From NCBI GenBank assembly GCA_965644265.1, contig OZ286462.1, positions 106,082,001 through 106,146,000 of the forward strand: a stretch of 64,000 bases of DNA, written 5' to 3'. How positions within the stretch are numbered: the first letter of the stretch is position 1; each line of letters opens with the position of its first letter. The notes under the pieces are model-generated. The model saw only the letters and a program-made list of their open reading frames with translations, had not been told where the DNA came from and ran no database searches. This stretch comes from Glycera tridactyla. Taxonomy: Eukaryota. The position numbers and the translations under genes are program-made. Below, one piece after another: positions 4,084 to 45,800 of the stretch.

Positions 4084-4549
4084 GTATCGTTCAACGTTTT
4101 TTCGACACGACTTGTGTCGGACTGAAACAATATTATTTTCTGGTATTTTTAAGCTTTCTTCCTGGAAAAAAATCTCAGCTGAAAAAATGGAGCACCATTG
4201 CCGAAAGGAGGTGAAAGCTCCTCGAGGCACATCTACAAGCAACCCGTCAATATCACACTGTCAATACCAGCATGTTTCTGACATGGCTTTTTTTTCCTGA
4301 AGTGGCAATAAAGTGGGCTTCTCACTATCACCAACAGCCAATAAGAACATCGGATACCATTCATGTATGGGATGATGGTACTATGGGAATATATACGTGA
4401 TGGGTGGGGGGGGGGGGGGGTCGTTGGCTGCTAGATCAGTAATGTAGGACCAAAATGAGACTATTCCCCTTGTAGCAACAGATGAAACACCACGGCACGA
4501 GATGCTAGACTGGAGACCGACTCTAAGCTTGACTGACTCAGCAAATGGG

Positions 4550-5220
4550 GGATATTTTGATTAATTTTTCGATTTTCCTCGGGACTTCTGTGAACGGAAA
4601 GTGATTTCGCGTATGAAATGAGCGGGTTTTGGGATAATCTTCACTCGGGATTACCCTATTCAGCGAGATGTTGCTACACACCTCTACTATTTGATACGAT
4701 ACAGCAGTCGTGGGGCATTGCATTTCGTAATGTTTGAATGCTGAGCTCCATCAAAAGTCTTCCTTATTGCCTGGACACTATAGTCATCTTCTCTGTGCTT
4801 AGAATACACCTCTCTACTAGTGAGAAGTTGCATCTAATCATATGGATGTGCCATTTTCAGTGAAGTATCAGGTGTTGAGTACTGCGTGTGATACTTCACA
4901 GCTGAATAAGGACTGCTTCTTGATGATTTCTCCCCTAATCCATGTGATGAAAGCAAGACTATATGACCGTGAGGCAAAAACGCAATACCAAACTCGGTGT
5001 GAATTTCTCCAGAGGTCACTTGGCATTCGGCCTCGGGACGTCAGGGGATAATCTTGTTTGGTATTGCGTTTTTTCTTCATGGCCATATAGTCTTGCTATA
5101 CTTACATATGCGTATTCTTTCCCAGCAAGAGGTTATTCGCTTTGAGGAATGGAATCATTTCATGGAGTCGTAGGAGATGCAAGCTGAGCAACCAGAACTG
5201 CATTGAACGACCTACATCAA
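4550..5220 (+). pseudogene. Decayed intronless rhodopsin-family GPCR
   Basis: Across frameshifts: ILINFSIFLGTSVNG (TM1), F..NL.S (TM2), LIA.D..(Y)..I...LR-YTSLL (TM3/DRY region), MISPLIHVM (TM5), WYCVFSSWPYSLAIL (TM6 W-x-P-Y). Confidence 0.45.
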
Positions 5221-5235
5221 GCATACACTATGCTT

Positions 5236-5311
5236 ATCATCACTAACTATCTCTTCAGATCATCACTAACTATCTCTTCATATCATCACTAACTATCTCT
5301 TCATACCATCA
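5236..5311. repeat. 23-bp tandem repeat x~3
   Basis: atcatcactaactatctcttca(g/t). Confidence 0.9.
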
Positions 5312-6961
5312 CTGTTATACCACAGATAGAGCTGTGAGCGTGAGATACGGACCCGTGGTGTATTGTGTGAAATACACCATGGTTTTCAAAATACACCACG
5401 GATATTATGCGCGATGACGAAAGAATGCTTCCCTTGTGACGCCGTCTTCGTTACGCAGTTCATGATGTCTGTTTCCGGCAGTCTGAGCTTGTTTGGAATT
5501 GATTATTTTGGGCCATTTCTTTGATAAATGTATTATCTGCGGTATAAAAACAAGAACGTATGATCATCGACAAAAATCACAATATTCCACTCGGTGGAAC
5601 TGCCGTGGGACGTCACTCGGTCTCCGGCCTCGTAATATGCCTGTACTTTGTGATCATCTTCATACCGGAAACGCTTCACACCGGAGACGCCCCATTGTAT
5701 GGAGTAATTGTATTTATACATGACCAGTGAAATGGCGATACAAAATAAAGAATTATCTATCTATCCACCGGTGACTATATACAGTGTGCCATTGAATGGT
5801 CGATAATTAGACGTCAAGCATCTGTGTTGACTACTGGACCAATCTCATTTGTGTGATCCCCCACGTGGCATTCATCCAATTAGAGCTTATAACGGTAAAG
5901 CTTCCGTATTTGATGGATGCCACCATTCAGTGACAATTAATTCAGTATTATCACTATTCAGATTATTCCTCATCTTAGTACAATCACCCATCCATCTTCA
6001 TTTCAATCATTGGATATCTGACTTCTTCCAGATTTAAATGATTGATGTCTATATTAACCGCACTCGCCAAGAGGAAGGAGGTCAATACCTCACCGCCTTT
6101 GCTTTCTCTGAGCTGGTGCATTCGCTCCTAGTAAAGGAGCATCAGCATTTTACCTGGAGAAAAATTGGTAAATCTGACACTTTCCAGGAAAGTTGCCTTT
6201 AGTGTCCCTGAGTTCAAAAAAGATTAGGTCCCCCAAAATCCCCAAGGAGCTGACTGTGGTGGCACAAAATCCAAAATGCCCGCCATCTACAATAGGGAAT
6301 ATATAACGTCTGAACTGATTGTCACAGATTGAGTGTCAATGGGTAGGGAAAGTTATTTCTGACATCATTTTCATAATGCAATCTCATGGTTCATCACTAT
6401 CATCACGATCAATATAAAATTGAGTCGAAAAAACTTGAACCTTTACCGCATACGTCACTGCGTCGCAACGTGCGTGTTCCCAACTACGCTCTATGCACAC
6501 ATGCAGTAAAGTGTTGAATGATTATATCTCAGGCTATGGCTGACTGAGCTTGAACACGCAATTTTGAAACAGGTACCAGCCCATTCACTGAGACATTCAT
6601 CAGTGATGGATTGGATAAAATAGTGACTAAAATGATTACAATTCTGCAATATTTTGTTTCATGTGTAGGAAGTTATTCCCAACATTTATGAGCGATATCA
6701 GGGACTCAGAGACCCATAAGGCAACTTTCTTGAAAACAAACCAGCTTACCCTTTTTTACGAGGTTGGGTCAAAATTTGACCTAATGTTCCCGTACAATTC
6801 TGAGTCTTGCACTTATGAGCCTGTGAATATGAGTAAATTCCAGAAGACAGTTGCACTGTAAAAAGTTCTCATATATGGGATCTATGACTAGCTTCTCATT
6901 TGATGAAAAAACACTAATTATCGTGAAAAAAAAATTCTGCCATGCAACGATTTCACAGAAT

Positions 6962-8560
6962 TGCAGTGTGGGCAATTTGAGTGTAGGCCCGTTCATGCAG
7001 CATTTGAGTGTAGGCTCCTTCATGCAGCATTTGAGTGTAGGCTCCTTTATGCAGCATTCGAGTGTGGGCTCGTTTCATGCAGCATTTGAATGTAAACTCA
7101 TTTCATGCAGCATTTGAGTGTAGGTTCCTTTCATGCAGCATTTGAGTGTAGGCTCCTTCACGCAGCATTTGAGTGTAGGCTCGTTTCATGCAGCATTTGA
7201 GTGTAAACTCATTTCATGCAGCATTTGAGTGTAGGCTCCTTCACGCAGCATTTGAGTGTAGGCTCGTTTCATGCAGCATTTGAGTGTAAACTCATTTCAT
7301 GCAGCATTTGAGTGTAAACTCATTTCATGCAGCATTTGAGTGTAGGCTCATTTCATGCAGCATTTGAGTGTAGGCTCATTTCATGCAGCATTTGAGTGTA
7401 GGCTCATTTCATGCAGCATTTGAGTGTAGGCTCGTTCATGCAGCATTTGAGTGTAGGCTCCTTCACGCAGCATTTGAGTGTAGGCTCGTTTCATGCAGCA
7501 TTTGAGTGTAAACTCATTTCATGCAGCATTTGAGTGTAAACTCATTTCATGCAGCATTTGAGTGTAGGCTCATTTCATGCAGCATTTGAGTGTAGGCTCA
7601 TTTCATGCAGCATTTGAGTGTAGGCTCATTTCATGCAGATTGAATGTAAACTCATTTCATGCAGCATTTGAGTGTAGGTTCCTTTCATGCAGCATTTGAG
7701 TGTAGGCTCCTTCACGCAGCATTTGAGTGTGGGCTCGTTTCATGCAGCATTTGAGTGTAAACTCATTTCATGCAGCATTTGAGTGTAAACTCATTTCATG
7801 CAGCATTTGAGTGTAGGCTTGTTCATGCAGCATTTGAGTGTAGGCTCCTTTATGCAGCATTCGAGTGTGGGCTCGTTTCATGCAGCATTTGAATGTGAAC
7901 TCATTTCATGCAGCATTTGAGTGTAGGTTCCTTTCATGCAGCATTTGAGTGTAGGCTCATTTCACGCAGCATTTGAGTGTGGGCTCGTTTCATGCAGCAT
8001 TTGAGTGTAAACTCATTTCATGCAGCATTTGAGTGTAAACTCATTTCATGCAGCATTCGAGTGTAGGCTCATTTCATGCAGCATTTGAGTGTAGGCTCAT
8101 TTCATGCAGCATTTGAGTGTAGGCTCATTTCATGCAGCATTTGAGTGTAGGCTCATTTCATGCAGCATTTGAGTGTAGGCTCATTTCATGCAGCATTTGA
8201 GTGTAGGCTCATTTCATGCAGCATTTGAATGTAAACTCTTTTCATGCAGCATTTGAGTGTAGGTTCCTTTCATGCAGCATTTGAGTGTAGGCTCCTTCAC
8301 GCAGCATTTGGGTGTGGGCTCGTTTCATGCAGCATTTGAGTGTAAACTCATTTCATGCAGCATTTGAGTGTAAACTCATTTCATGCAGCATTCGAGTGTA
8401 GGCTCATTTCATGCAGCATTTGAGTGTAGGCTCATTTCATGCAGCATTTGAGTGTAGGCTCATTTCATGCAACATTTGAGTGTAGGCTCATTTCATGCAG
8501 CATTTGAGTGTAGGCTCATTTCATGCAGCATTTGAGTGTAGGCTCATTTCATGCAGCATT
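6962..8560. repeat. 27/28-bp minisatellite, ~57 copies, with higher-order variant pattern
   Basis: Unit gcagcatttgagtgtaggctcatttcat with recurring variants (aaactc, aggttcc, ccttcac, gggctcg). Confidence 0.97.
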
Positions 8561-11089: not shown

Positions 11090-11900
11090 GCCTCTCTCGA
11101 ATCAGTACAGAATAATATTGATAGATGGATCAGTGAGTCCTAATAAAATTGAGATGCAATTAGCTTATCTTATGATGTACTCGTGCAAAAGACATTGACA
11201 TATGATGTATGACATAATTAGAAGATTTCCATCCTGGCTGATTTAACAATGAATATAATTGTTATCAGTATTCACAGTAGTATAAGGGGATCATTGTGAA
11301 AATATACCAAAACCACCAACAAAGTACAAATTGTCACCCACGTCAGAATTCAAGAGAAAAGGTTACACAATGCAGATGCAAGTCGATATCCACATTGTCA
11401 TCTGTGTTGACTCAAATAGAATCTTTCACCTCAGTACCAGAGAAATGAGTAAATGGCATAATCAATTGGATCAATGGTGAATGAAGGTGAGACCGTTGGA
11501 TGACACTGATTTGATTGGATGACATTCCCTCTTATTATTATTCTGATGTGGTGTGAGCCTGTGCTAGGATGTGTTATCACTGGTTTTGTTTAAATTTTAT
11601 GAGTAGAGATCGGGAAGGTTTAGCTTGGCTTGCATCGTGAGATGACAAACTATCTAGTAGATGGCAGGCATTACAAATGAGTGAGCTTGGTGCTAAGCTC
11701 CACTTCTCTTATCACCCTCGAGGGATTCATTCATCTCCCGGTGAAAAATGAGACTCTCCACTTCGGTCGCGACTACTCACACATCATTGGTTGACAAGCT
11801 GCCAACTAGTAGCCTGATATGACCACTCTTATTAGCACTGATTGATTCACTAGCAACTGAGCCAGATAAGCCAACGTAAATCCGTCATCATCCATACTAC
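11090..11900 (+). pseudogene. Duplicated block X (Ig-like remnants); paralogs at 25960-26720 and 35215-35962
   Basis: Shared stretch gagatgacaaactat..agtagatggcaggcat.acaaatgagtg.gcttggtg...agctccacttctcttatcac in three copies; conserved frame DAISLSDDV, YTKTT..IV..VRIQE, C(V/S)(D/A)SN. Confidence 0.45.
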
Positions 11901-25260: not shown

Positions 25261-28200
25261 ATGATCACTTCCGTGCCACGCCATGGGAGTCTTGATCAAG
25301 CGATTATATTCATGGCGAGATCGAATATGAAAAAAAATCTACAAGACTACCTCGAGTGTCGAGTTGTTGAAATATGTACTTTGTACCTGAGACTCCATGT
25401 GTAAAGCAATGAAAATATGTACTTTGTATATGAGACTGAGATGCCGGGATGGTAAAAGTCTCTCCTGGGAATGACAAGTCAAATGGTATACGTACTTGTG
25501 GAAATAAGGTGGTTTAGCCTTGTAACATCTATGAATGTTGTCTGAGATGGCCATTCTCTCACAGTTTTGGAATGATGGTCACTAGCAATCATATATAGCA
25601 GTTTGATCTGAAGGCTCCATTTGTCATGGTCAATAAAAGTGCAAAAACCTTTGACATTTGACCCAAGCCATTTCATTTCAAACAAAGCAGACGATTAGAG
25701 TAATTGGTTACTATTCTGAATAAGAAACCAACAGAATCAATTCTAATATAGAATGGAAGACAAATTTGCTTGAAGCATTTTGTTCAGTCATCTGTATTAA
25801 GGGATGGCCAAACATTAAGGGAATATGAGGATCTGTTACTTGACCCAATATCGCACTACAAAATACTTTATATAATCAATTCCTTCAGCGTCTCATCCAA
25901 TTCTTTGATTTGGGTAGTATCACTTAGCCACACTGGTGAAAAAAGGGTGGTCAAAATAGACTGTTTATCATTAAAACCATTATCGAATCATTACAGAAAA
26001 ATATTCATGGATGGATTGGTTAGCCCTAATGAAAATGCAGATGCAATTAGCCTATCTGATGATGTTCTTGTCCCGAAAAAAAAGTTTTTATGGTAGTGTG
26101 AAGTTAATTTGTAGAGATTTATAAAACAACCAACAACCTACACTTTTCGTCCATGTCAGAATTCGAGGAGAAAGGTGATAATGTGCAATACTTTCCAACA
26201 TCTACATTGGCAACTGTGTTGATTCGAATAGAATTGTTCACTACAGCACTACAGCAAATATACAAATGACATAATCAATCACATCACTGGTGAATGAGGA
26301 TGAGAACATTGAATGACAATACTTTGTTTGAATGACATTCCAACTTATTATTACACTGATGCGATGTGAGCCAGTGTAGACATGTGATATCATAAGCAAG
26401 TTGCAAACACCAGTTTGGTCAAATTTGTTGATAGAGATAGGGAATTTGTAGCTAGGCTCACGACGTGAAATGACAAACTACCCAGTAGATGGCAGGCATC
26501 ACAAATGAGTGGGCTTGGTGTCAAGCTCCACTTCTCTTATCACACTCGCGGGATTCATTCATCTCCTGGTGAAAAAATGAGACACTCCTCTTGGCCATGA
26601 CTTCTTACACATCATGGGATGACAAGCTGCCAACTAGTAGCCTGATATGACCACTCTTATTAGCACTGATCGATTCACTAACAACTGAGCCGGATAAGTC
26701 GACATAAATCTCACATCATCCATTCTCCGATAACTACGTAAGACATATTTTGGATCCGTATTAGCCGTTATAATTCACGGAATGCCCTCAATGGGGAACC
26801 AATGTTTCACGATGCACATCAGAATTATGATCCTCATACAGTATGCTCTGGTGAATGAACCGGTGCAGGGTTACCGGTGAATGCTGCTTCTATATACGGC
26901 ATTGACCTTTTGAGACCATAATTTTTATCACAGCCTTTTATTAGAGCCCCTCACCACCTGCTAATAAATGACGCAATATCATTATTTGCTGGACACGTGC
27001 ATGTGTTTTTTCAACGTATAGTAGCAGATAACAGGGAATAGAAATTGTCATTCTTTCATTCCTGGCAAGAATCATGATAGATAAATCATCGAAAAACGTC
27101 TCCTTGTTCTCTCTCGAAAGAACTGTGGAATGAAAACACAGTGCGTCGGTTGTTTGTTTAGTTGTCCATAGCATCTTGAAACATTGATGTTATGGGCATT
27201 CAAGTATCCCGAATCTTAATCTTTTATTGGAAATAAATTGAACCAAGACGATAAATTGTATGCTGACCAAGGAATAAATGTGGTGGTTCATTGGTTTAAT
27301 GTCACGTCGGCGTCATATGTGCTATATTGCAATGTCTCTGCGATTGACCTCAGTAGGTCTCCTCCCTATGGATCCCCGAAGGAAATTGAATGATCATGAA
27401 ATTCACATGAATACATGAAATGAATTTTTTCAATCTACCCAACATCTTGCAAAGGAAAAATGGGATGTCTGGATCGGCTATAGAAAGAATTGAGGTCATC
27501 ATTCATCCATCGGGCATGGATTGTTGTAGGCACCACCCACCTGTATCATGTCATGACATATCTTGGATAGTAATGATGGTTGGTTGTCTAACTTTTCATG
27601 AACCTCGGCTGGGCTATATCGATACGTCCATGCAATAGGAATGCATGGTATCATCCAGGACTATATCTGCTACAGGCAAACCATCAGCCAGCTACACCTG
27701 AGACCATTTCACTGAAGAGAAAAGAAATAGCTTAGAGGGATAGGAAAGAGGTCAAGAAAAAGAAATCTGGTGATAGTGCAATTTTGGTAGAAAATGCCTA
27801 AAGATAGATGATAGAAAATTGTGAAGGTATGTTTTCATTCAACCCCCCATTCCAAAAGATATTGAGAAGAAGAGAAGGGATGATGCTACACCTAGGCCAC
27901 ATCGTACCCGATGGCAACACTTCAGAGTAAAAGTCCCACGCCCATTGGACCAGGCACATCAGTTCTGGGTTACTAGGGCTGCGACTAGGTTTACTAGGTT
28001 GTGTGATGGCATTGTACTGCAAGCATAGGGCAAGCCATGATTGTAAAGCTGGTTTGAAGTTGACAGTTCGTAATTGAAGACATTATTTGAGTATTCTCCG
28101 AACCTAATGCTTTTCCTTGTTTCAAGTACTGCGCTTTGCGTGAAAAAAGCATAGCTATCAGGCTTGAGGGTTAGCTTCCAGCCAGCTACATAGTTAGATA

Positions 28201-34417: not shown

Positions 34418-36357
34418 GACATTCCAATGTCATTACCCGACTTATGCTTCATTGAAAATTATGGTGGAATCAAGGCTGATATTCAAGGTATGTACATTTT
34501 GTCACTGAAACTTCTGGTATGTGTACCGTCATGTACTCCATCAAGAGAATACAGTGATGATGCATAACCATGTACTTGAAATTGTTTGAGTAAACTCATG
34601 TTTACATGATCGTCAAACCGACATACTCAAAACAAATATTTTAAGGGCGTGTATACTCTTGTGGATATCATGTACAAAAATGACTCTTCTCAGATATACC
34701 CTTGACTCAATTTTTGAAGTTTGTAATCAAGCAGAATGATTACCTCTGTTCCTGATTCCCTGCTGCATGAGTGACTTATGGGAGGTATATCTTAACTCCC
34801 GGTCATCTGATTCTGGTGGGGATTTCGATGGCAGTATCCCTATTTTGCACCCCACAAGTACCAATGACAGTCAATGGTCTGCAGATGCTGGAAGACTGGT
34901 TGCGTATCAGATATATACACTAATCACCTGAAGCAGGATATATTTAGCAGCAGTCGAACACTGTAGCCTGCAAGCACTCAGGTGACCTACTTCGGGGCTG
35001 GTGCTAGTGAACAAAGGTTCACAGGGATTTGGTCTAGCTACGGCATCCTCATTAAGGAGGGGGCACTTTCTCCGTCTAATGTCCCTTCATGATATCACCC
35101 AGCTGTCCGTTGACCCGTGACATGATGGTATTCCCTTGCTCAAGTCTTCAAGCCTAATCTGAGTAATCCTATCGGCAAAATCGGGAATTTTGCAATGAGG
35201 CTGTTTATCATTTCAGCCTGTCTCGAATCAGTGAGAAATGATATTAATGAATGGATTAGTGAGTCTCAATAAAAATGGAGATGCAATCAGCTTATCCGAT
35301 GATGTATCTGTATGGAAAATATTGAAATATGTTGTATGACATGATGTGTGGCCTTCAAATGCAACTGATGATACAACAGATTTCATCAGTATTCACAGAA
35401 GAATAAGGGGAACTTTGAATGAATATACCAAAACAACTGACATACTACACATTGTCGCCTGAGTCAGAATTCAAGATGAAAGGTAATAAGGTGCAAATAC
35501 CGCCTAACATCTACATTATTAGCTGCTCTGCTTCGAACACAATGTTTTCACTGCAGCACTGATGAGATGAATAAATGACATACTCAGTTACATCACTTGT
35601 GAAGGGAGGCAGGACCGTTGAATGATGACACTCTGATTGGATGACATTCACACTTATCATTAAACCGATGTGATATGAGCCTGTGCTAGGATGTGATATC
35701 ATGAGTCATTTGCAAACACTGGTTTCTGGACAAAGTTCGTTGATAGAGACAGGGAATTTACAGCTAGGCTCACAACGTGAGATGACAAACTATCCAGTAG
35801 ATGGCAGGCATTACAAATGAGTGAGCTTGGTGTTAAGCTCCACTTCTCTTATCACACTTGAGGGATTCATTCATCTCCCCATGAAAAATGAGACACTCCA
35901 CTCTTGTTGCGACTACTCACATATCATGGACTTACAAGCTGCCAACTGGTAGCCTGATATGAGACATGGGGGTAAATTTTGAATTAGGCAGATCGGATCT
36001 AAGTGGTTTGGAGATCTGAGGAGCAGCTAGGCTTTTATTTCATGGGCATGTTCAAGTGGCCTGGTACAGACAGTGCTGTCTTCATTCCCTTTCCTGAGGT
36101 GAGTGCACAGGCGCTCGGAGAAGATCGGCGGCGGTAGCGGCGGGCGTAATAGTAGAGTAAAGGAAGGTCCGAATGTTCCGTGTACGAAAACTGACACCTC
36201 AACGGAGATCTTCAAAATATAAGTTTTGAGAGCATGACAGCAGTTTACTTACGCACGAATGATTAGAAAACCATATTCTCTACACGTTACCCCCATCAAA
36301 CACCCACAACGCTACTTTATCTGTGAGAATCCTCCATCTGAATACACAAATTCTGTC

Positions 36358-36379
36358 CTGCACCACTTGTCATGACGTT
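36358..36379 (-). repeat. Subterminal inverted motif, partner at 43273-43294
   Basis: AACGTCATGACAAGTGGTGCAG vs AACGTCTTGACAAGTGGTGCAG (21/22), ~250-265 bp from each terminus. Confidence 0.85.
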
Positions 36380-36802
36380 CTCAGGCGGATTGGACGGGTG
36401 TCATGACTCCCACTGCCCACAGCTTGTGACAGGGGACCAGACAAACCTATTCAGCAGCAAATACTCCCGGTTACAAAATATAAATAGGAATAAGAGTAAG
36501 AAATCTTCATGGCAAACTTTGTCCTGAACATTGGTCCGACAATACAATAAAGGTAGAGCATGATTCACAAATTACACAACAGATACAAATAGAGTAAATG
36601 GATAAGAACATTTCCAGCAGATACGAATAGAGCAAAATGTACAGATACAGATACAAAAATGTTCAGCATACTTTCAAAACGGGGGCTGATGAGTTCAATG
36701 GTCACACCAACATTACCTAGGGTTGTGGTAGGCTCATCACAGAAAATACCAAATGAAAAAAAGGTCTCATTTCGATGATTAACTTGATGAAAAAATGCAT
36801 GT

Positions 36803-36928
36803 TTGTCATATGGGAGATGAGCTCCATCCTGTCATGGTCTGCCTTTATTTCAATAATTAAGTAGATCAGAAAATTCACGCTTGTCATATGGGAGATGAGC
36901 TCCATTCTGTCATGGTCTGCCCTCATTT
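36803..36928. repeat. ~48-bp direct repeat, period 78
   Basis: ttgtcatatgggagatgagctccat(c/t)ctgtcatggtctgcc at 36803 and 36881. Confidence 0.9.
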
Positions 36929-37068
36929 TGATGATTAACTAAAGCCTGAACAAATCAACACATGCACCATAGAGGATTACTGTTTGTCAAAGCAACTGAG
37001 GCTGCAGGATCATTGCAATCCAATGCAACCAGCAGTCCATCAAAACAAGTCTCGACAAAGTATATATA

Positions 37069-38267
37069 CTAGCTGTCAGAGATAGACATCTAGATCTAAC
37101 CATCAGAGATAGCTGTCTAGACCCAGCCGTCAGAGATAGCCTTCTAGACCTAGTTGCCGCCTAGACCTAGAAGCCGTCTAGATCTAGCTGTCAGAGATAG
37201 CTGTGTAGACCTAGCCGTTAGGGATAGACATCTAGACCTAGCTGTCAGAGATAGGCAGAGAGAGACGTCTAGACCATAGCTGTCTAGACCCAGCCGTCTA
37301 GACCTAGCAGTCAAAGGTAGCGATATAGACCTAGCCGTCAGAGGTAGTCGTCTAGACACAGCCGTCAGAGATAGCCGTATAGACTCAGCTGTCAGAGGTG
37401 GCCGTCTAGACCCAGCCATTGGAGATAGCCGTCTAGACCTAGCCTTCAGAGAAAGCCATCTAGACCTAGCCATCAAAGCTAGCTGTCAAGACCCAGCCGT
37501 CAGAGATAGCCGTATATACCTAGCCTCCAGAAATAGCCATCTTGATCCAGCCGTTGCAGGAAGCCGTCTAGACCTAGCCGTTAGAGGTAGCCATATAGAC
37601 CTAGCCGTCAGAGGTAGCCATCTAGACCCAGCTGTCTGAGATAGCTGTATAGACCTAGCCTTCAGAGATAGCCGTATAGACCATAGCCATCTAGACCCGG
37701 CCGTCGGAGATACCTGTCAAGACCCAGCCGTCAAAGATAGCCGTATAGACCTAGCCTCCAGAGATAGCCATCTAGACCCAGCCGTTGCAGAAAGCCGTCT
37801 AGACCTAGCCGTCAGAGGTAGCCATATGGACCTAGCCGTCAGAGGTAGCCATCTAGACCCAGCTGTCAGAGATAGCTTTATAGACCTAGCCTTCAGAGAT
37901 AGCCGTATAGACCATAGCCATCTAGACCCAGCCGTGAGAGATAGCCATCTAGACCCAGCTGTCCGAGATAGCTTCATAGACCTAGCCGTCAAAGATAGCC
38001 GTATAGACCTCGCCTTCAGAGATAGCCATCTAGACCCAGCCGTTGCAGAAAGCCGTCTAGACCTAGCTTTCAGAGATGGCCGTCTAGACCTAGCTGTCAG
38101 AGATAGCCATCTAGACCTAGCCGTCAGAGATAGCCATCTAGACCTAGCCATCTAGACCCAGCTGTCAGAGATAGCCATCTAGACCTTGTTGTCAGAACTA
38201 GCCATCTAGACCTAGCCATCAGAGATAGCCATCTAGACCTAGTCGTCAGAGATAGCTGTCTAGACCT
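37069..38267. repeat. Divergent ~27-bp minisatellite, ~44 units, inside the TIR element
   Basis: Consensus tagacctagccgtcagagatagccatc; 231-bp higher-order duplication (ctgtcaagacccagccgtc at 37483 and 37714). Confidence 0.95.
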
Positions 38268-38494
38268 GATGAAGCGCCCGGCAACTACACGATTTTTAAT
38301 GGGGGCTTTCACAGACTCGGGATATGCCACCCTCGGGCTGGCATTTGCGGTTGAGTGGGAGGGATGGAATTCCAGAATTATCTTGCTAATAGTAGAGTTA
38401 AGGAATGAACTCTGTACTTGTTGTGCTTGCTCGTATGCTATATTTACAGCTAACCACACGATTCAGATGTCCCCTCTGGGTCATAATTGTCCCC

Positions 38495-38570
38495 ATGGTG
38501 ACGTCTGTGACGTCACGCGTTTGGCGATGCTACGTCACAGCAACAACGCTTGAATCTGCGCCATTTTGAA
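38495..38570 (+). promoter_or_regulatory. Putative promoter upstream of SGNH ORF
   Basis: CpG-rich; TGACGTCA at 38508-38515 plus partial CRE sites; GCGCCATTTT (YY1-like) at 38558-38567. Confidence 0.35.
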
Positions 38571-38719
38571 TTCAACCAGCCGGGCGGCAGGTTAGGATTT
38601 TCGGGTGGACGGAATTTCTGGATTTACTCTCTGACTTTGCGCTTGGTGACACACAAGTTACGGTAAACTTGCACCTTGACACCAACCCCACTCCGTTCCG
38701 TTCCCTGACCATTGTTGCG

Positions 38720-39334
38720 ATGGAACCAAGGGCCTGTTTCATCGGACACCTTCTGTCTCAAACGGGAGGCGTGGTTGGAGCAACTTATGAAGAGCGGTTG
38801 GCTACCGTCTTCGGAGTGAACCATTTCTTCAGTGAAATACAGTTTTGCTACACCCCATTATTATACGGACAAGATTTCGTGAATGCCGTATGGTCGTTGA
38901 ACTGGTTTGCCCCTCAGGCGGTGGTATTGATATTGATCAAATGATTTGCGCGGAGACAATGTTGATGGTGTTGATGTAGCCAACCAAGTGTGGCGCCTCG
39001 CCCAAGAATTACTGGGGGTACCTTCTGTCACTTGCATTCATGTTGTGGGTTGTCTTCTCAGAGCTTCTAACCTCGGGTGCGATGAATCTGTTTTCAACAC
39101 ACATGTTGAACAATTCAATGATCGTCTTCGCAACTTCAAAAAGTGACACCCGAAATATGCATCATATTTCTCAAGGGTTTCTCACGCCGCGCAGATGGTT
39201 CAGTCATGTCAGTTTGGGAATATGCTCAAGACGGGATTCATCCCGGTCCTGATCCTGCGCATTGGGCTTTCCGGAGCTTTTCTGATCAAATGTGTAGATC
39301 ACTTTTCAGCCTCAGAAATGAGATTGAGCACTAA
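38720..39334 (+). pseudogene. SGNH/GDSL hydrolase-like ORF of Ngaro type, frameshifted
   Basis: MEPRACFIGH (block I, GHS-type), PQAVVL..(G)SNDL across the frameshift at ~38935 (block III GxND), QDGIHP (block V DxxH). Confidence 0.75.
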
Positions 39335-39724
39335 TTTGCTGCCCGGTTGTTTTTTCTCCACATTTCCGCGTTTTTTGATTTGGTACTGGTTTAAGTTTGT
39401 GCTATTTTGTGTTGCAATTGGGAATGAGTGTTTTATGGTCCTTGAAGAAGGATTCTGAGTCCAATGACTCTATATTTGTCTACATTTATTTTGACCTCGA
39501 AGGGGGTCATCGTCCACGTATCATCAGCGCGAAATACGTGCTTGGTGGCGTGTTGTAAGCCAGCTGTCAAAAGACGGGGGAAATTAATATTATTTGGAGC
39601 CAATGCTCTTTAATAATCATCTGTTCACGTCAATACGTGTTGTCACGGCACATATTGGGCTTTGTGCCTTCATGTCCCGTTCACGGGCTGCCCTCTTGTT
39701 TCCCGCCATATTGCGGCGTAGCCG

Positions 39725-39920
39725 GATACCCGGAGTGCCGCTTCCAATCAGATGGCGGGATTGATGTGACGTCATCATCTGACCTCGTGGACTGGTCTGC
39801 GATGAGTGCCGCTTCCAATGAGCGCCTCGCCTCGTGTCATGTGACCGCGGCTCGCCGTTGGATTGGTCGACGGCCGGTCGTTGTCAAGGTGGCACGCCCT
39901 CCCCGTGCCTTAAAATAGAA
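39725..39920 (+). promoter_or_regulatory. Putative retroelement promoter upstream of gag
   Basis: 16-mer GAGTGCCGCTTCCAAT twice (39733-39748, 39804-39819), TGACGTCA 39767-39774, reverse CCAAT ~39862, CpG-rich. Confidence 0.4.
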
Positions 39921-40363
39921 TTGTTGCCAAAAAAGCTAGCGTGTGGCGGTGCGACAGTGCTTGTCGAAAATATCAACGTTTTGCCGTCATATTCAACAAG
40001 GTATGTGTTTCCATACATGGCACACACTTTTTGGTCTATGGGGGCGTTTCACAGTTGATTTTGTTCCTATTAGCCATGTTATTCCCACGTCAGTTAGGAC
40101 CATCGACCGACAGATTGTGACGCGCCAGTGATAGCGCCATTTCATTCTTTCCACCTTTCTTTGGATCGATACCAAACTCCTTACCATTTTCTCATTCACA
40201 TCAATTAGTCACAGTCTTGAACCTTCGTTGTCGCCTGTCGGCCTACAATTTCTATGCAAGCTTGGATTGCACAGAGACGTGTGTCACGTGCCACTCCCCC
40301 CCCCCCCTGCCCCCCCGCTTGTGCCTCTTGTCGGTACTTAAAAATCTTTATTCGGCAGGTGTC

Positions 40364-41695
40364 ATGATTCGGAAACGTCCTTCGAAGACAAAGTTGGCCC
40401 AGTCGTCCATTCCAAAGAGATCAGTGCAGCTGACGGACAGGCTTCTCTTCTCGCCCATGGCTAACGTGTTAAATCCACGGAGGGAGAACACTAGGTCAGA
40501 TTCGGATTTGGCATCTGATAGCGGGGTGGCCATCTCGCCCAATGACACGCCTGCCGCGGTGCCTTTGGCTGTGAGACTGGATAATGCGAATGGCATCCTT
40601 AACGTGGCTGGTTCTTCTTCTGGTCCCCGTGTGTCATCGTCGATTCAGAGTATCTCGTCTCCAGAATATGCTTCTCTTCTTGCTATCATCAATGACACGG
40701 CGACAGCTGTCAAGTCAGTGGCTTCCTCTGTGTCCGAATTAAAGAACTCCTTTGACTCACATGTGCAGGGGTGCAGTGCCGAGCACCCTACTCACACCCA
40801 AGCCGCTGAAGACGATGAGCCAATCACTGTTTTGAACGCTGCAGATGCTACAGATATGGGATTGGTGCCAGGTTTGGACCAAGGTATGGGTGACCCGCTT
40901 TCTGATCTTGCTGTAGCTGGTGAGCAGGATGATCCTGCCTTGAACATTCCTATCCTTGAGTTACATACCCCAGGACCATTAACTTGCTCAGGTCTGAAAT
41001 GTGGCGAAGTCGTGGACAAGAAGCTGATCAGTGTAATCTGGCAGGGATCTTACTTGAACTTAGCTTCTTTGCTACCAACTGAATACGAACCCAAATTTGA
41101 ATTAGCTTTCAACCCTTCCGATTCGTCGGGGGCTCTTTCTTTTGTGCAAAAGGGGGCTCGTACTATCAAAGATATAAATCAGTGGTCACAATGTTTTGAG
41201 ATATTCATGGCCGTCCTCCTAAGGAAGCCGGGCAACAGTTCTCTAGCAGCCGAGCTTCTTACTTACTACCGTTTCGTCAAGCAAATGGCGGCTGATCGTT
41301 TAGATTGGAAGTCGTATGACGAGGTGTATAGAAGGGAACGTTCATTTACTTCCCAGCCACCCTCATGGGACGCAATTAGGACCGATCTTTACACACGTGT
41401 CATTGCAAAGAAGACCGTGTCTTTTTCTAAGCCTTCATCTTCTGCCGGGGGATTCGATTCCAACAATATCACTATCCATAAGGTCCCACGAGCATACTGC
41501 TACGCCTTTCACAATCAAGGCCAGTCATGTAGCAAAGGCAAGGATTGCGGGTACAAGCACTCTTGCCCCACTCCTGGGTGCGATGCGGCCCACCCTGTTT
41601 TCAAGTGTAACAAATCAAATGAATCTAAAAAGACAACCAATAAAGATCGAGCTAATAAGCAATCTGATCTTGCTAAGATAGAGAATAAGAACTAA
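40364..41695 (+). CDS. gag: Gag-like protein of a Ngaro/DIRS (tyrosine-recombinase) retrotransposon, 443 aa from first ATG
   Basis: Uninterrupted ORF (open from 40217); YLNLASLLP, IKDINQWSQCFEIFMAV, WKSYDEVYR motifs; C-terminal C-x8-C-x5-C-x3-H finger followed by C..PGC...HP...C. Confidence 0.85.
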   Translation: MIRKRPSKTKLAQSSIPKRSVQLTDRLLFSPMANVLNPRRENTRSDSDLASDSGVAISPNDTPAAVPLAVRLDNANGILNVAGSSSGPRVSSSIQSISSPEYASLLAIINDTATAVKSVASSVSELKNSFDSHVQGCSAEHPTHTQAAEDDEPITVLNAADATDMGLVPGLDQGMGDPLSDLAVAGEQDDPALNIPILELHTPGPLTCSGLKCGEVVDKKLISVIWQGSYLNLASLLPTEYEPKFELAFNPSDSSGALSFVQKGARTIKDINQWSQCFEIFMAVLLRKPGNSSLAAELLTYYRFVKQMAADRLDWKSYDEVYRRERSFTSQPPSWDAIRTDLYTRVIAKKTVSFSKPSSSAGGFDSNNITIHKVPRAYCYAFHNQGQSCSKGKDCGYKHSCPTPGCDAAHPVFKCNKSNESKKTTNKDRANKQSDLAKIENKN

Positions 41696-42870
41696 ATTCT
41701 TCATTTTTTCTGTGTTTTAGGGTTTAATTACTTCAATGAAGGGCCCTTCCCTATCGCGTCAGCGCTCCCAACTCCCGTTTCGCCAGATGAGCTTGCCAGA
41801 CAATTACATGGGTATGACCGGGAGACAGCTTTGTATTTGGTAAATGGCTTTACCTTTGGCTTCTCAATGGGGAGAGCAGTTGGGCCTGTCTTTCAGGCCG
41901 AGAAGAATTCTCTTCCAGCTGAGAGAAGCCCTGACATTGTCCTAAAGTTGGTCAAGAAAGAGCTTGGTTTGTGTCGTATGGCCGGACCTTTCGTTGAAAT
42001 GCCGTTTGAGTACATGCCCATCGCCCCACTCACCATCAGGCCCAAAAAAGAGCCGGGGAAATTTAATACCTCTCATATCCTTATTCATGTTTATCTATCA
42101 ATGGTTTGATTCCTGACAGCGAAGCTTGTGTCAAATATGCCTCCGTGGGAGACGCAATTAAGTGCATTATGTCCATGGGAAGAGGAACTTATCTGTGTAA
42201 GACAGACGTAGTATCTGCTTTCAGGCTCATGCCCATCAACCCCAATGAGTACCATTTGCTGGGGTTCCGCGTGGGCGATCATTACTATCATGACAAGTGT
42301 TCAGTTTTTGGGGGCATATCCAGTTGCAAAATTTTCGAAACATTCGCGACGGCCATCGAATGGATAGCCAGAAACAAATTCGGTATCACAAATATTATTC
42401 ATTACATAGATGATTTCCTCCTCCTCAACCGCACGGAGTCCTCTTGTTTGACCTCTTTGCATATTTTCTGTGCCCTCTGCAAGCGTCTAGGGGTGCCCCT
42501 GGCACCGGACAAAACTGTGGGGCCGTCGAGAAGCCTGGTTTTCCTGGGTATCGAGTTGGATACCTGCGAATTTTATGCCACCCTCCCATGTTATAAGGTG
42601 GATGAATATGTCAATCGCATTGAAGCTTTCTTGAATTCAGATATTGTTACCCTGGCAGAACTACAGCAAATCTTGGGCTGCCTCCAATGGGCGGCCAATG
42701 TGGTTCTGCCAGGACGTCCTTTTCTCCGACGACTGATAAATTGTACATGCAGGAAAAGGTCACCATATTCCAAAATAATTCTCTCGTCTGAGGTCAAAAA
42801 TGACCTTCGTATTTGGCTGATTTCAACGGGTCTGACATGCTAATTGGTGATGAGTTCTACTTTGTCATGG
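41696..42870 (+). pseudogene. pol: Reverse transcriptase of Ngaro/DIRS type, frameshifted and truncated before RNase H
   Basis: LPTPV, GF..GF, KEL...RMAGPF, PKKEPGKF, KTDVVSAFR, FG..SSC.IFE, HYIDDFL (YIDD 42403-42414), LGVPLAPDKT, FLGIELDT; frameshifts at ~42065 and ~42825 (IWL/FNG). Confidence 0.93.
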
Positions 42871-45800
42871 TCTGCCTCTATTTCAATAATGAATTTCAGA
42901 ATCTTCTGCTCACCTCATTTATATGTTGTATTATTGTTATGTATTTGCATTTCCCAAGGTCTGTTATGCTATGCTTGCCTCAGTGTTCGTAGTCTCTCTT
43001 GTCTTGTATGGTTCATACTCACACCTTGTTATTTTTGTCTGTCTTGGTTCTTTCTCTTTTCTAGTTTTGTATGTTGTATGTTGTATGTTGTATCATTATC
43101 GTTTATAATTGAAAAAGAACAATTTAGCCAAAGAGCAGGTGCCTAACAAAAATCGGTAATCAATTTTCCGGGCATTCAACATTTTATTTTGAATTAATAA
43201 CAGAAACTTTTGTAAATTTTGGAAAACATTTTTTAACCAATCAGAAGCCAGCTCCTACAATATCTGCTGATCAACGTCTTGACAAGTGGTGCAGACGCCA
43301 ACAAGTTGGATCTAACTTTTTTTTCTTTCAGAATATACTGCAAAGATGAGTTTTGATGTAGTGGATCCCCGAAAAATGTTCTTATGAATGATTTATTCGC
43401 GGCAAACTGGATTTTAATAGCTTATTTACAGCACATTGACAGTTTACCTGTCCGCGCGCTCCGACGCGTCAATCTATTATCGCTCAGACATTCGGACCTT
43501 CCTTTACTCTACTATTACGCCCGCCGCTACCGCCGCCGATCTTCTCCGAGCGCCTGTGGGTGAGTGGCCTCCGTCCACTTTCTGCCAATGGTGTTTGTAT
43601 CTGGTACAGCTATGTACGTAATCCATACAGGATGAACATATGATAAATCATGAAAGAATGCAAAGCATGATATCACATTTATTCTTGTGCCTAAATACAC
43701 CAAGTATTATATGCAATAGAATATATTCAGTTTTTTCCTGTATTGATATAGACAGCCAGCTCCACACCAAGCACCATGCCATGTATGAGGGCTGCCTCTC
43801 TTTGTGACCCATCCTGCTATATCAATACATAGAGCTCATCAGAACAGCCTCTCATCATGCGGTCACAGTCCTGCAACGAGATGCCAATATGCTGGCAAAC
43901 ACATAGCAGAACATATCCACTTCAAAGAGGGTTGCCGTGTAAATATACATCCGTGAGCAACATCCAAAGGCCAATAATTGCCTACTTGTCTTCCCTGTTG
44001 ATAATGAAGCTCATAGACCAATATAAATTGGAGGATTCATTTGTATTAGTATTTCAATATACATATAGAACTGATGTTCTCACCCGGTGGTATCCTGAGG
44101 TCATTCATCTGATGCAATTGATTGGTCTTCGTAAACAGGTTAAACTGTATCGCAATGCATCTATCGGTATGTATGAGCTTACCTGCATTTTTTTCATTTT
44201 TTTTCCACCCGTAACACAAGAGTTTTCATCACTGAAATGCAGTTCAGTATGTGGCTTGGTCAGCAGTCTGTGCTCCCTGATATAGGTTGTACCCCTGATG
44301 CATCTGCCTCCAGAGTGCAGAATCTGATCGTAAATTTCGTGCTCGATACTTACTCTTACTCGAATTTTTCTGGCAGGAATACATGTAAGTATGTACTTGA
44401 TATATTAGGCGATGGTAAAGGAAAAGTGAAAAGAAAGCGGAATAGTTAAAGATAAGAAAGCGTGGGGCGCTATATTCAGGTTTACATTCATAAGGCTTTC
44501 ACTAAAACCAATGTAGCGATGTAAGCGAATGCATACACCATGAACCCAAGCACTTTCTATCCCTATTTTCGGTTCAGGACAATATTGTAGTCAACCATCG
44601 CCAGCATGAACTCTTAAATGTGCACGTCATTTTATATGGATCACTTTCTTGAGGGAACAGCCAGAGTTTTCTTGCCTGTTTTTGAATGTGCTTTTGTGCG
44701 AAGGCAGTGCATATCTTCCTTGTAATCTGCCTGTTATATCGATGCAGTGAGTTCATAAGAAAAGGCTCTTAGCATTTTGGCACGGGATGCCAATATTCTG
44801 GCTAACACACAAAAGACCGTATTCACATCACAGAGATTTCTGTACAAATATACATCCATGACCAACAACAAAATACCATCACTCAAACGTCTGCTAATGA
44901 GGTAGACAGATTGCAGTATCATATTTCGAACTGTATTAATGGAGTTCCATTCCAATTAGCTGTATTATCGATCTATACCTTACCAGCATCACAAACATGC
45001 AATTTGAATTTGGAAGGACCCTGCCTGGCCCATGCACAATTCAGTTGGATGAATGTGTGAGGTCCTGATTCGGAGAACAAATCTTGGCAGCGTTCAGGAC
45101 TTCTTCACTATTCATAAAATGGCATATTTATTATATCAATCATTGTAGGAGTCGAAGTTGAAGGCATCGATAGAATTCGCTACAGAATGTATGCCTTCTG
45201 TCAGTCTTAAAAAAAAAACCGTGAGAAATGTACTGACATTGCTCACAATATAGGCAATTGCCCGTGGTCAGTCATTTTAAACAGCATACCATCTAAATCA
45301 CTGGCAGTAGCAGCAGAGGAATCCAGACACACTATCCTATGACTTATTGATTCTCATCTTGTAGCTGATAGACCTGTCAATGTTGACATCCCATGTAATT
45401 GAGTGCTAATCATCTGCCTTTTATCATGGCCTATGTCTCATCATCGCCTTCTAGATCTTTTGGAATACCCCTCAACTACATGGGTGGACTCATTGGAATG
45501 TCTCTTATCTGAGTTTACAAAAGGAGGCGATATCCATGAAATACACAGACACTCGAAGTGTCATTCCTGGTACAAAAATGTTTACCACAGTTTGCCAACT
45601 CGGTCGGATGGCTGCTGATAATGATGGTCTTCGATGAAGAGGTGAATGGAAACCATTCTATGATCAACATCATGAATACTATCACAATTAATTGTTATTA
45701 ACCTCATGATTATCATTATCATCATTATCATTTTGCATCATCATCACTATCAACATTTTGATCATCCCCCCATACTTACCAATGCCCCTCTTTTCCTACT

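Follow-up and report, generated by a model that had tools for sequence, protein, structure and literature searches.

Is a retrotransposon fragment that lies between the perfect termini of a DNA transposon part of a composite that moves as one unit, or are two unrelated elements simply nested at a single place? The question is raised by a 7.45-kb element (36106-43558) in a 64,000-nucleotide stretch of the Glycera tridactyla genome (OZ286462.1 of assembly GCA_965644265.1, positions 106,082,001-106,146,000), which we call the window and whose coordinates are used here unless another locus is named. The comparisons come from one assembly of this 2.04-Gb genome, which has a GC content of about 41%. 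The element consists of a shell, bounded by DNA-transposon termini, and of a cargo derived from a Ngaro-type retrotransposon, and an earlier note on this DNA had proposed that the cargo is a cassette hitch-hiking on the DNA transposon. We find instead that the Ngaro fragment in the shell is an ordinary nested insertion for which no new composite class is needed. The two mobile elements are very probably unrelated, with the nesting having occurred just once.

The internal junctions carry most of this argument. A sister copy of the shell on sequence C7 has no interruption at the very point where 4.5 kb intervene in the window copy: it matches the window at 38200-38316, continues through five unaligned bases and then matches 42820-43140. 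On the left, the shell extends through 38316 and is followed at 38317 by TCGG, the canonical start of the retroelement's A repeat, which also follows unrelated flanks in four other copies, making five with that of the window. On the right, the retroelement extends through approximately 42821 and the shell resumes from approximately 42822-42824, with an imperfect microhomology of 5-6 nt between them. With the right junction as the query, shell copies align from position 281 onward and retroelement copies up to position 282 only. Measured against the C7 copy, the target lost about 2 nt at most.

No second genomic locus spanning a boundary between cargo and shell was found when the genome was queried with the right junction, the left junction and the gag sequence. 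We also compared the element by BLAST with 30 loci bearing its terminus. The termini, the left arm (1-596 in the numbering of the element), the arrays of a 27-bp repeat and the right arm (6734-7453) are common to the family, and the intervening segment 2212-6715 is present at none of the 30 loci. Because no second copy bounded by the terminal inverted repeat (TIR) shares the cargo, there is no composite family. A genome-wide search with the TIR, suggested in the earlier note, thus ended in the very result that the note had named as pointing to simple nesting: the junction is unique, the C7 copy is uninterrupted and the other TIR-bounded copies examined are devoid of the cargo. The hitch-hiking cassette is left unsupported, and the one-off nested insertion that the note had offered as the simpler alternative stands.

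By every structural criterion tested, the cargo is classed from its sequence as a single fragment of a Ngaro-type tyrosine-recombinase retrotransposon. It extends from 38317 to about 42821 (4.5 kb), with a complete 5' end and a 3' end cut off inside the reverse transcriptase (RT) open reading frame (ORF). Its right end corresponds to position 5418 of a complete relative, L061, inside the RT ORF of that element (4420-5934) and before the RNase H domain. The components listed in the earlier note were recovered with one correction. The SGNH remnant is real, sharing 51% identity over 229 aa with the GDSL/SGNH ORF of the full-length relative (several stops, middle third), and the gag is indeed intact, with a frame that stays open for 492 aa (443 aa when counted from the first ATG) and a ratio of nonsynonymous to synonymous change (dN/dS, or omega) of 0.07-0.08 against all relatives. 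The RT, described as intact, is not: an indel map and codon analysis reveal a frameshifting 10-bp deletion near 42060, private to this copy, and one in-frame stop, in addition to the end before the RNase H domain. As the note had stated, transposase, RNase H and tyrosine recombinase are all missing from the element. The window copy is without a recombinase because it is a fragment, the Ngaro family carrying one of its own; without RNase H, recombinase and 3' repeats, it cannot be autonomous.

Changes private to the window branch have an omega of approximately 0.10-0.11, and the corresponding value for two young intact copies is approximately 0.03-0.07. If a background omega of 0.05 is assumed, the excess amounts to approximately 1.1% neutral divergence (standard error (SE) 0.35%). 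The gag sequence matched no Pfam family, its exact protein is not on record, and no homologs were found at E ≤ 1e-20 in a collection of 5.8 billion proteins. The gag protein (40364-41692) may represent an undescribed gag lineage.

The assignment to Ngaro, already made in the earlier note along with the expectation of a tyrosine recombinase and no target duplication, is borne out by full-length relatives. Four relatives of the cargo exceed 75% identity, at 82, 79, 78 and 78%. The complete element L061 (L061:1029-8695; C29:58296028-58303694) is 7667 bp long and reads, in order, A1, a GDSL/SGNH ORF, a gag-like ORF, RT/RNase H, a Phage_integrase ORF, B1, A2, a 75-bp spacer and B2. The A1/A2 repeats of 314 bp and the B1/B2 repeats of 689 bp are each 100% identical within the pair, and ORF1 matches Lipase_GDSL_2 at 3e-5. 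A second relative, L062, has the same split-repeat layout, with repeats that are 99% identical. In both elements RVT_1 and RT_RNaseH are matched in the ORF preceding the Phage_integrase ORF, the latter scoring 32.5 bits in L062 and 26.3 bits in L061 (cut-off 27.1). We detected no direct repeat between the flanks of L061 or of L062 that would indicate a target duplication, and none of the ORFs yielded a methyltransferase domain. The split direct repeat architecture defines Ngaro-type tyrosine-recombinase retrotransposons (order DIRS; Goodwin and Poulter 2004, summarised in PMC9210276). The relatives thus share with Ngaro the A1...B1 A2 B2 arrangement, the gag-like ORF, RT/RNase H, the recombinase, the SGNH ORF and the lack of a target duplication, whereas the window copy retains only the part from A1 to the middle of the RT, and of the split repeats A1 alone.

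Gene order sets this family apart: the SGNH ORF comes after A1 and before gag (in L061, L062 and L059), whereas in the described Xenopus Ngaro families it follows the recombinase (PMC9210276). The ORF seems dispensable for transposition in this family, because L062 is without most of the SGNH region although its repeats are 99% identical; for the same reason, loss of SGNH sequence need not be decay after insertion. The lineage is present in low copy number and is under strong purifying selection. Among four Ngaro target sites for which both flanks are known, two are palindrome-like, namely that of L050 and the C7-type site of the window; that of L062 is not, and that of L061 is ambiguous. L050 (L050:736-1812; C13:22720562-22721638) is a solo A-spacer-B derivative, analogous to a solo long terminal repeat (LTR), presumably left behind when A1 recombined with A2; the two flanks are almost perfectly palindromic about the insertion point.

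The shell, for its part, belongs to a family of cut-and-paste DNA transposons with 8-bp duplications and is a non-autonomous member of it. Its outermost features proved to be as the earlier note had described them. The two 71-nt arms are 100% complementary, and the first 26 nt of the terminus have at least 167 genome matches with no more than two mismatches, against 0 for a reversed control, which marks them as the termini of a genuine repeat family and not a chance match. The insertion lies in a dispersed repeat of approximately 190 bp, of which the genome has at least 35 copies that are 76-88% identical. The exact 8-bp duplication on the two sides is genuine, because three paralogous target repeats without the insertion (L072, L073 and L074) are contiguous across a single copy of the 8-mer or of a variant differing at 1-2 bases. 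Duplications of 8 bp accompany 13 of 13 paired family copies, with differing sequences that are together 62% GC. No transposase ORF is present in any family copy examined or beside any solo terminus, which is why we regard the family as non-autonomous here; the search for an autonomous partner with the same TIR, which the earlier note had advised, linked no transposase to these termini. The coordinates of all features are collected in Table 1.

Table 1. Features of the nested element and its target duplication in the window
Feature	Start	End	Strand	Support
Left copy of the 8-bp target site duplication (GGTGAGTG)	36098	36105	.	
Left terminal inverted repeat, 71 nt, begins CACAGG, 9 CpGs	36106	36176	+	No window-private bases
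Left subterminal shell arm, with a 78-bp unit x2.3 at 36766-36941 (TRF)	36177	37075	+	Family copies 77-79%
Tandem array of ~45 copies of a 27-bp repeat, 231-bp higher-order unit, shell family	37076	38267	+	TRF
Shell directly left of the retroelement	38268	38316	+	93% to C7:64344000-64344115, which runs on into right-arm sequence
A repeat (5' split direct repeat), begins TCGG	38317	38627	+	75-82% to A1/A2 of relatives
Broken SGNH/GDSL hydrolase ORF remnant	38596	39331	+	tblastn against L061 ORF1, E 8e-63
Intact gag-like ORF, first ATG 40364, C-terminal Cys/His-rich motif	40217	41695	+	
Reverse transcriptase, frameshifted, one stop, ends before RNase H	41831	42821	+	RVT_1, E 9e-11
Right junction patch resembling both RT and shell target	42817	42823	+	Alignment of window, C7 shell and three retroelement relatives
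Right subterminal shell arm	42824	43487	+	90-92% to C7 and C17 copies
Right terminal inverted repeat, 71 nt	43488	43558	-	
Right copy of the 8-bp target site duplication (GGTGAGTG)	43559	43566	.	

Arrays of the 27-bp repeat occur in all long family copies, often as inverted pairs. Bases private to the window copy make up 13% of the left arm and 2.5% of the right arm, and the termini have none. The observed/expected ratio of CpG is 0.45 in the left arm and 0.45-0.52 across arms and arrays, with 0.55 for the genome; the two termini retain all 18 CpGs and are identical to the family consensus. Short members of the family with 100% identical termini and perfect duplications also exist. Nesting is common in this family, since the shell copies L031 and L066 contain LINE-like RT fragments. 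Several long copies hold further inserts of unrelated sequence, and certain copies carry a nested second partial copy of the same family. Long copies are foldback-like, with 27-bp arrays from each arm lying in opposite orientation and meeting in the middle of the element, as in L065 (C13:55947047-55951286), L060 (C7), L064 and L068.

How might the nesting have come about? The shell copy, which must depend on a transposase encoded elsewhere, inserted into the dispersed repeat, and a Ngaro-type copy integrated into the shell between the 27-bp array and the right arm. Both junctions may have been made in one aberrant event, with a canonical left end and a right end that was end-joined or template-switched. 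Such a one-step aberrant integration is what the junctions suggest, and a single origin for the two is favored because a later deletion must end within a couple of bases of the integration point. The fragment would then have been dead on arrival, because a truncated integration of this kind left out RNase H, the recombinase and the 3' repeats. In DIRS-1, the intermediates are reported to be mostly linear single-stranded cDNA and many genomic copies to be fragmented (PMC7192593), which makes aberrant integration plausible. The junctions may preserve an integration by tyrosine recombinase that was completed at one end and then aborted, and would in that case offer a rare view, in nature, of how Ngaro elements enter DNA.

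Several points weigh against this account of a one-off nested insertion at the present site. The sequence before insertion is defined by a single uninterrupted sister copy (C7, 92% identical), and junctions and allelic states rest on one assembly. The cargo shows approximately 1.1% (SE 0.35%) of neutral-type decay, as read from the excess of private nonsynonymous changes in gag and RT, the stop, the 10-bp deletion and the broken SGNH ORF, whereas no change is seen in the termini (142 nt) or the duplication (16 nt); a decayed cargo between unchanged ends would be slightly more readily accounted for by a shell that last jumped after the nesting.

It is accordingly this order of events that yields the strongest rival: the fragment entered the shell elsewhere, and the 7.45-kb composite then hopped here as a unit with the transposase supplied in trans, a single event and not a family. 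If this is true, the retroelement fragment reached its present locus through transduction by a cut-and-paste transposon. The shell belongs to an old lineage, judging by its private left-arm bases and its CpG depletion, yet its termini equal the consensus with all CpGs kept, a pairing that argues for selection for mobility on the lineage. Transposase has been active recently, as is evident from the short members with identical termini and perfect duplications, and cut-and-paste movement leaves no donor, matching the single-copy state. The approximately 1% neutral decay of the cargo also contrasts with the perfect duplication. This contrast is, however, less telling than it seems. The earlier note had taken the perfect termini and duplication as marks of a recent insertion, an argument that is flawed: unlike in the case of LTRs, transposition does not regenerate the termini, so they cannot date the last jump, and the 8-bp duplication alone does so, weakly, its 16 bases giving a likelihood ratio of approximately 1.2-1.8. 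The cargo lesions, moreover, may predate the insertion if the source was defective, the SGNH ORF being dispensable as L062 indicates, and the junction occurs at no second locus. We regard movement as a unit as a possibility of some substance that nevertheless falls short of being probable.

A second alternative retains nesting and divides it into two steps, in which a full-length Ngaro element integrated and a later deletion took its 3' 3.3 kb (the rest of the RT, RNase H, the recombinase and B1-A2-B2). Transposable elements often undergo internal deletion, this family recombines internally, as is seen in the solo A-x-B derivative L050, and the microhomology at the right junction fits microhomology-mediated deletion as well. 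The deletion would, though, have had to end within approximately 2 nt of the integration point despite an arm of approximately 700 bp, a coincidence of about 1 in 100 or rarer, and we consider this course of events unlikely.

Several DNA-transposon superfamilies are known to take up filler DNA in the course of repair, and the shell might in principle have acquired the fragment as Pack-MULEs acquire genes, if repair of the gap left by excision had switched to a genomic Ngaro copy as its template. The microhomology at the right junction would agree with this origin. The left junction, in contrast, coincides to the base with the canonical terminus of the retroelement, as would be expected if the element had integrated by itself or if its DNA intermediate ended there, but not after a random template switch, and the assembly holds no donor closer than 82%, leaving capture very improbable. 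Least credible of all is an artefact of assembly joining a DNA transposon to a retroelement, which the repeat-rich region might invite but which is contradicted by the structured junctions (an exact terminus on the left, microhomology and an intact target on the right), by the match of both shell halves to one contiguous sister copy and by the absence of N runs from the element.

The ordinary nested insertion that we favor leaves the shell to be placed among DNA transposons. It is of the cut-and-paste kind with 8-bp duplications, for which hAT, P and KDZ are all candidates and Merlin is excluded. Its 8-bp duplication is like that of hAT elements, but of the 13 target sites only one agrees with nTnnnnAn, the usual consensus for hAT targets, and no hAT transposase partner was found for the shell termini. 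For the P superfamily, the 5'-CA...TG-3' termini are compatible and the duplication length of 7-8 bp is matched; the shell targets are GC-rich. The 8-bp duplication and the 5'-CA...TG-3' termini of the shell are also compatible with KDZ-type elements (PMC12730594). Merlin elements have duplications of 8-9 bp and termini that begin 5'-GG (PMC8101967), and are ruled out by the CACAGG start seen here. P, KDZ and Merlin transposases all have long open frames in this genome, with 36 matches to P-type transposase and KDZ frames that reach 1091 aa. None of the P, KDZ or Merlin transposase matches lies within 10 kb of any TIR match among those listed, and the shell termini are absent from the one P-type transposase locus inspected. 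Merlin/IS1595-type transposases are numerous in this genome, with 342 candidate matches, of which 150 were scored; many have frames of 350-425 aa and they fall into several subfamilies. The many long open frames suggest that Merlin activity is recent.

Nesting of this sort has a close parallel in Galileo, a member of the P superfamily whose non-autonomous copies hold nested transposable elements (PMC2775673). Like the shell, Galileo copies are long and non-coding, with conserved termini, internal repeats and unrelated guests, and each nesting is unique to one copy. The differences are that the duplications of Galileo are 7 bp long whereas those of the shell are 8 bp, and that its guests are bounded by duplications of their own, whereas the tyrosine-recombinase guest described here has one canonical end and one end with microhomology. 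Pack-MULEs and similar elements likewise carry foreign sequence between functional termini, movable in trans in principle, as here. These elements are defined, however, by amplified copies that share the captured fragment, whereas the composite in the window is single-copy and has a junction of the integration type.

As a clean, well-bounded retroelement fragment nested in a non-autonomous DNA transposon, the locus adds little beyond its annotation and should not enter catalogues as a composite class of its own. It is mildly unusual in the junction structure of the truncated Ngaro and in the SGNH-first gene order, and in no other respect. Its by-products may interest those who study transposons. 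One is an uncharacterised DNA-transposon family with 8-bp duplications, 71-bp termini and foldback-like 27-bp arrays, and another is a low-copy invertebrate Ngaro lineage with an SGNH hydrolase ORF upstream of gag. The third is a Ngaro insertion that is exact at its 5' end and truncated at its 3' end, the junctions of which constrain models of integration by tyrosine-recombinase retrotransposons, a mechanism on which direct evidence is scarce (PMC7192593).

Around the composite, the dispersed target repeat occupies 35959-36105 and 43559-43600. A scan of the element and its flanks with ARAGORN, target repeat included, found no tRNA, and a search of the assembly with the left flank for an empty allele or haplotig returned diverged paralogs alone. 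Just to the left of the target repeat, the segment 35506-35962 has copies at approximately 26197-26650 (81%) and 11424-11822 (78%). These two copies sit 9 and 24 kb upstream, suggesting local segmental or tandem duplication.

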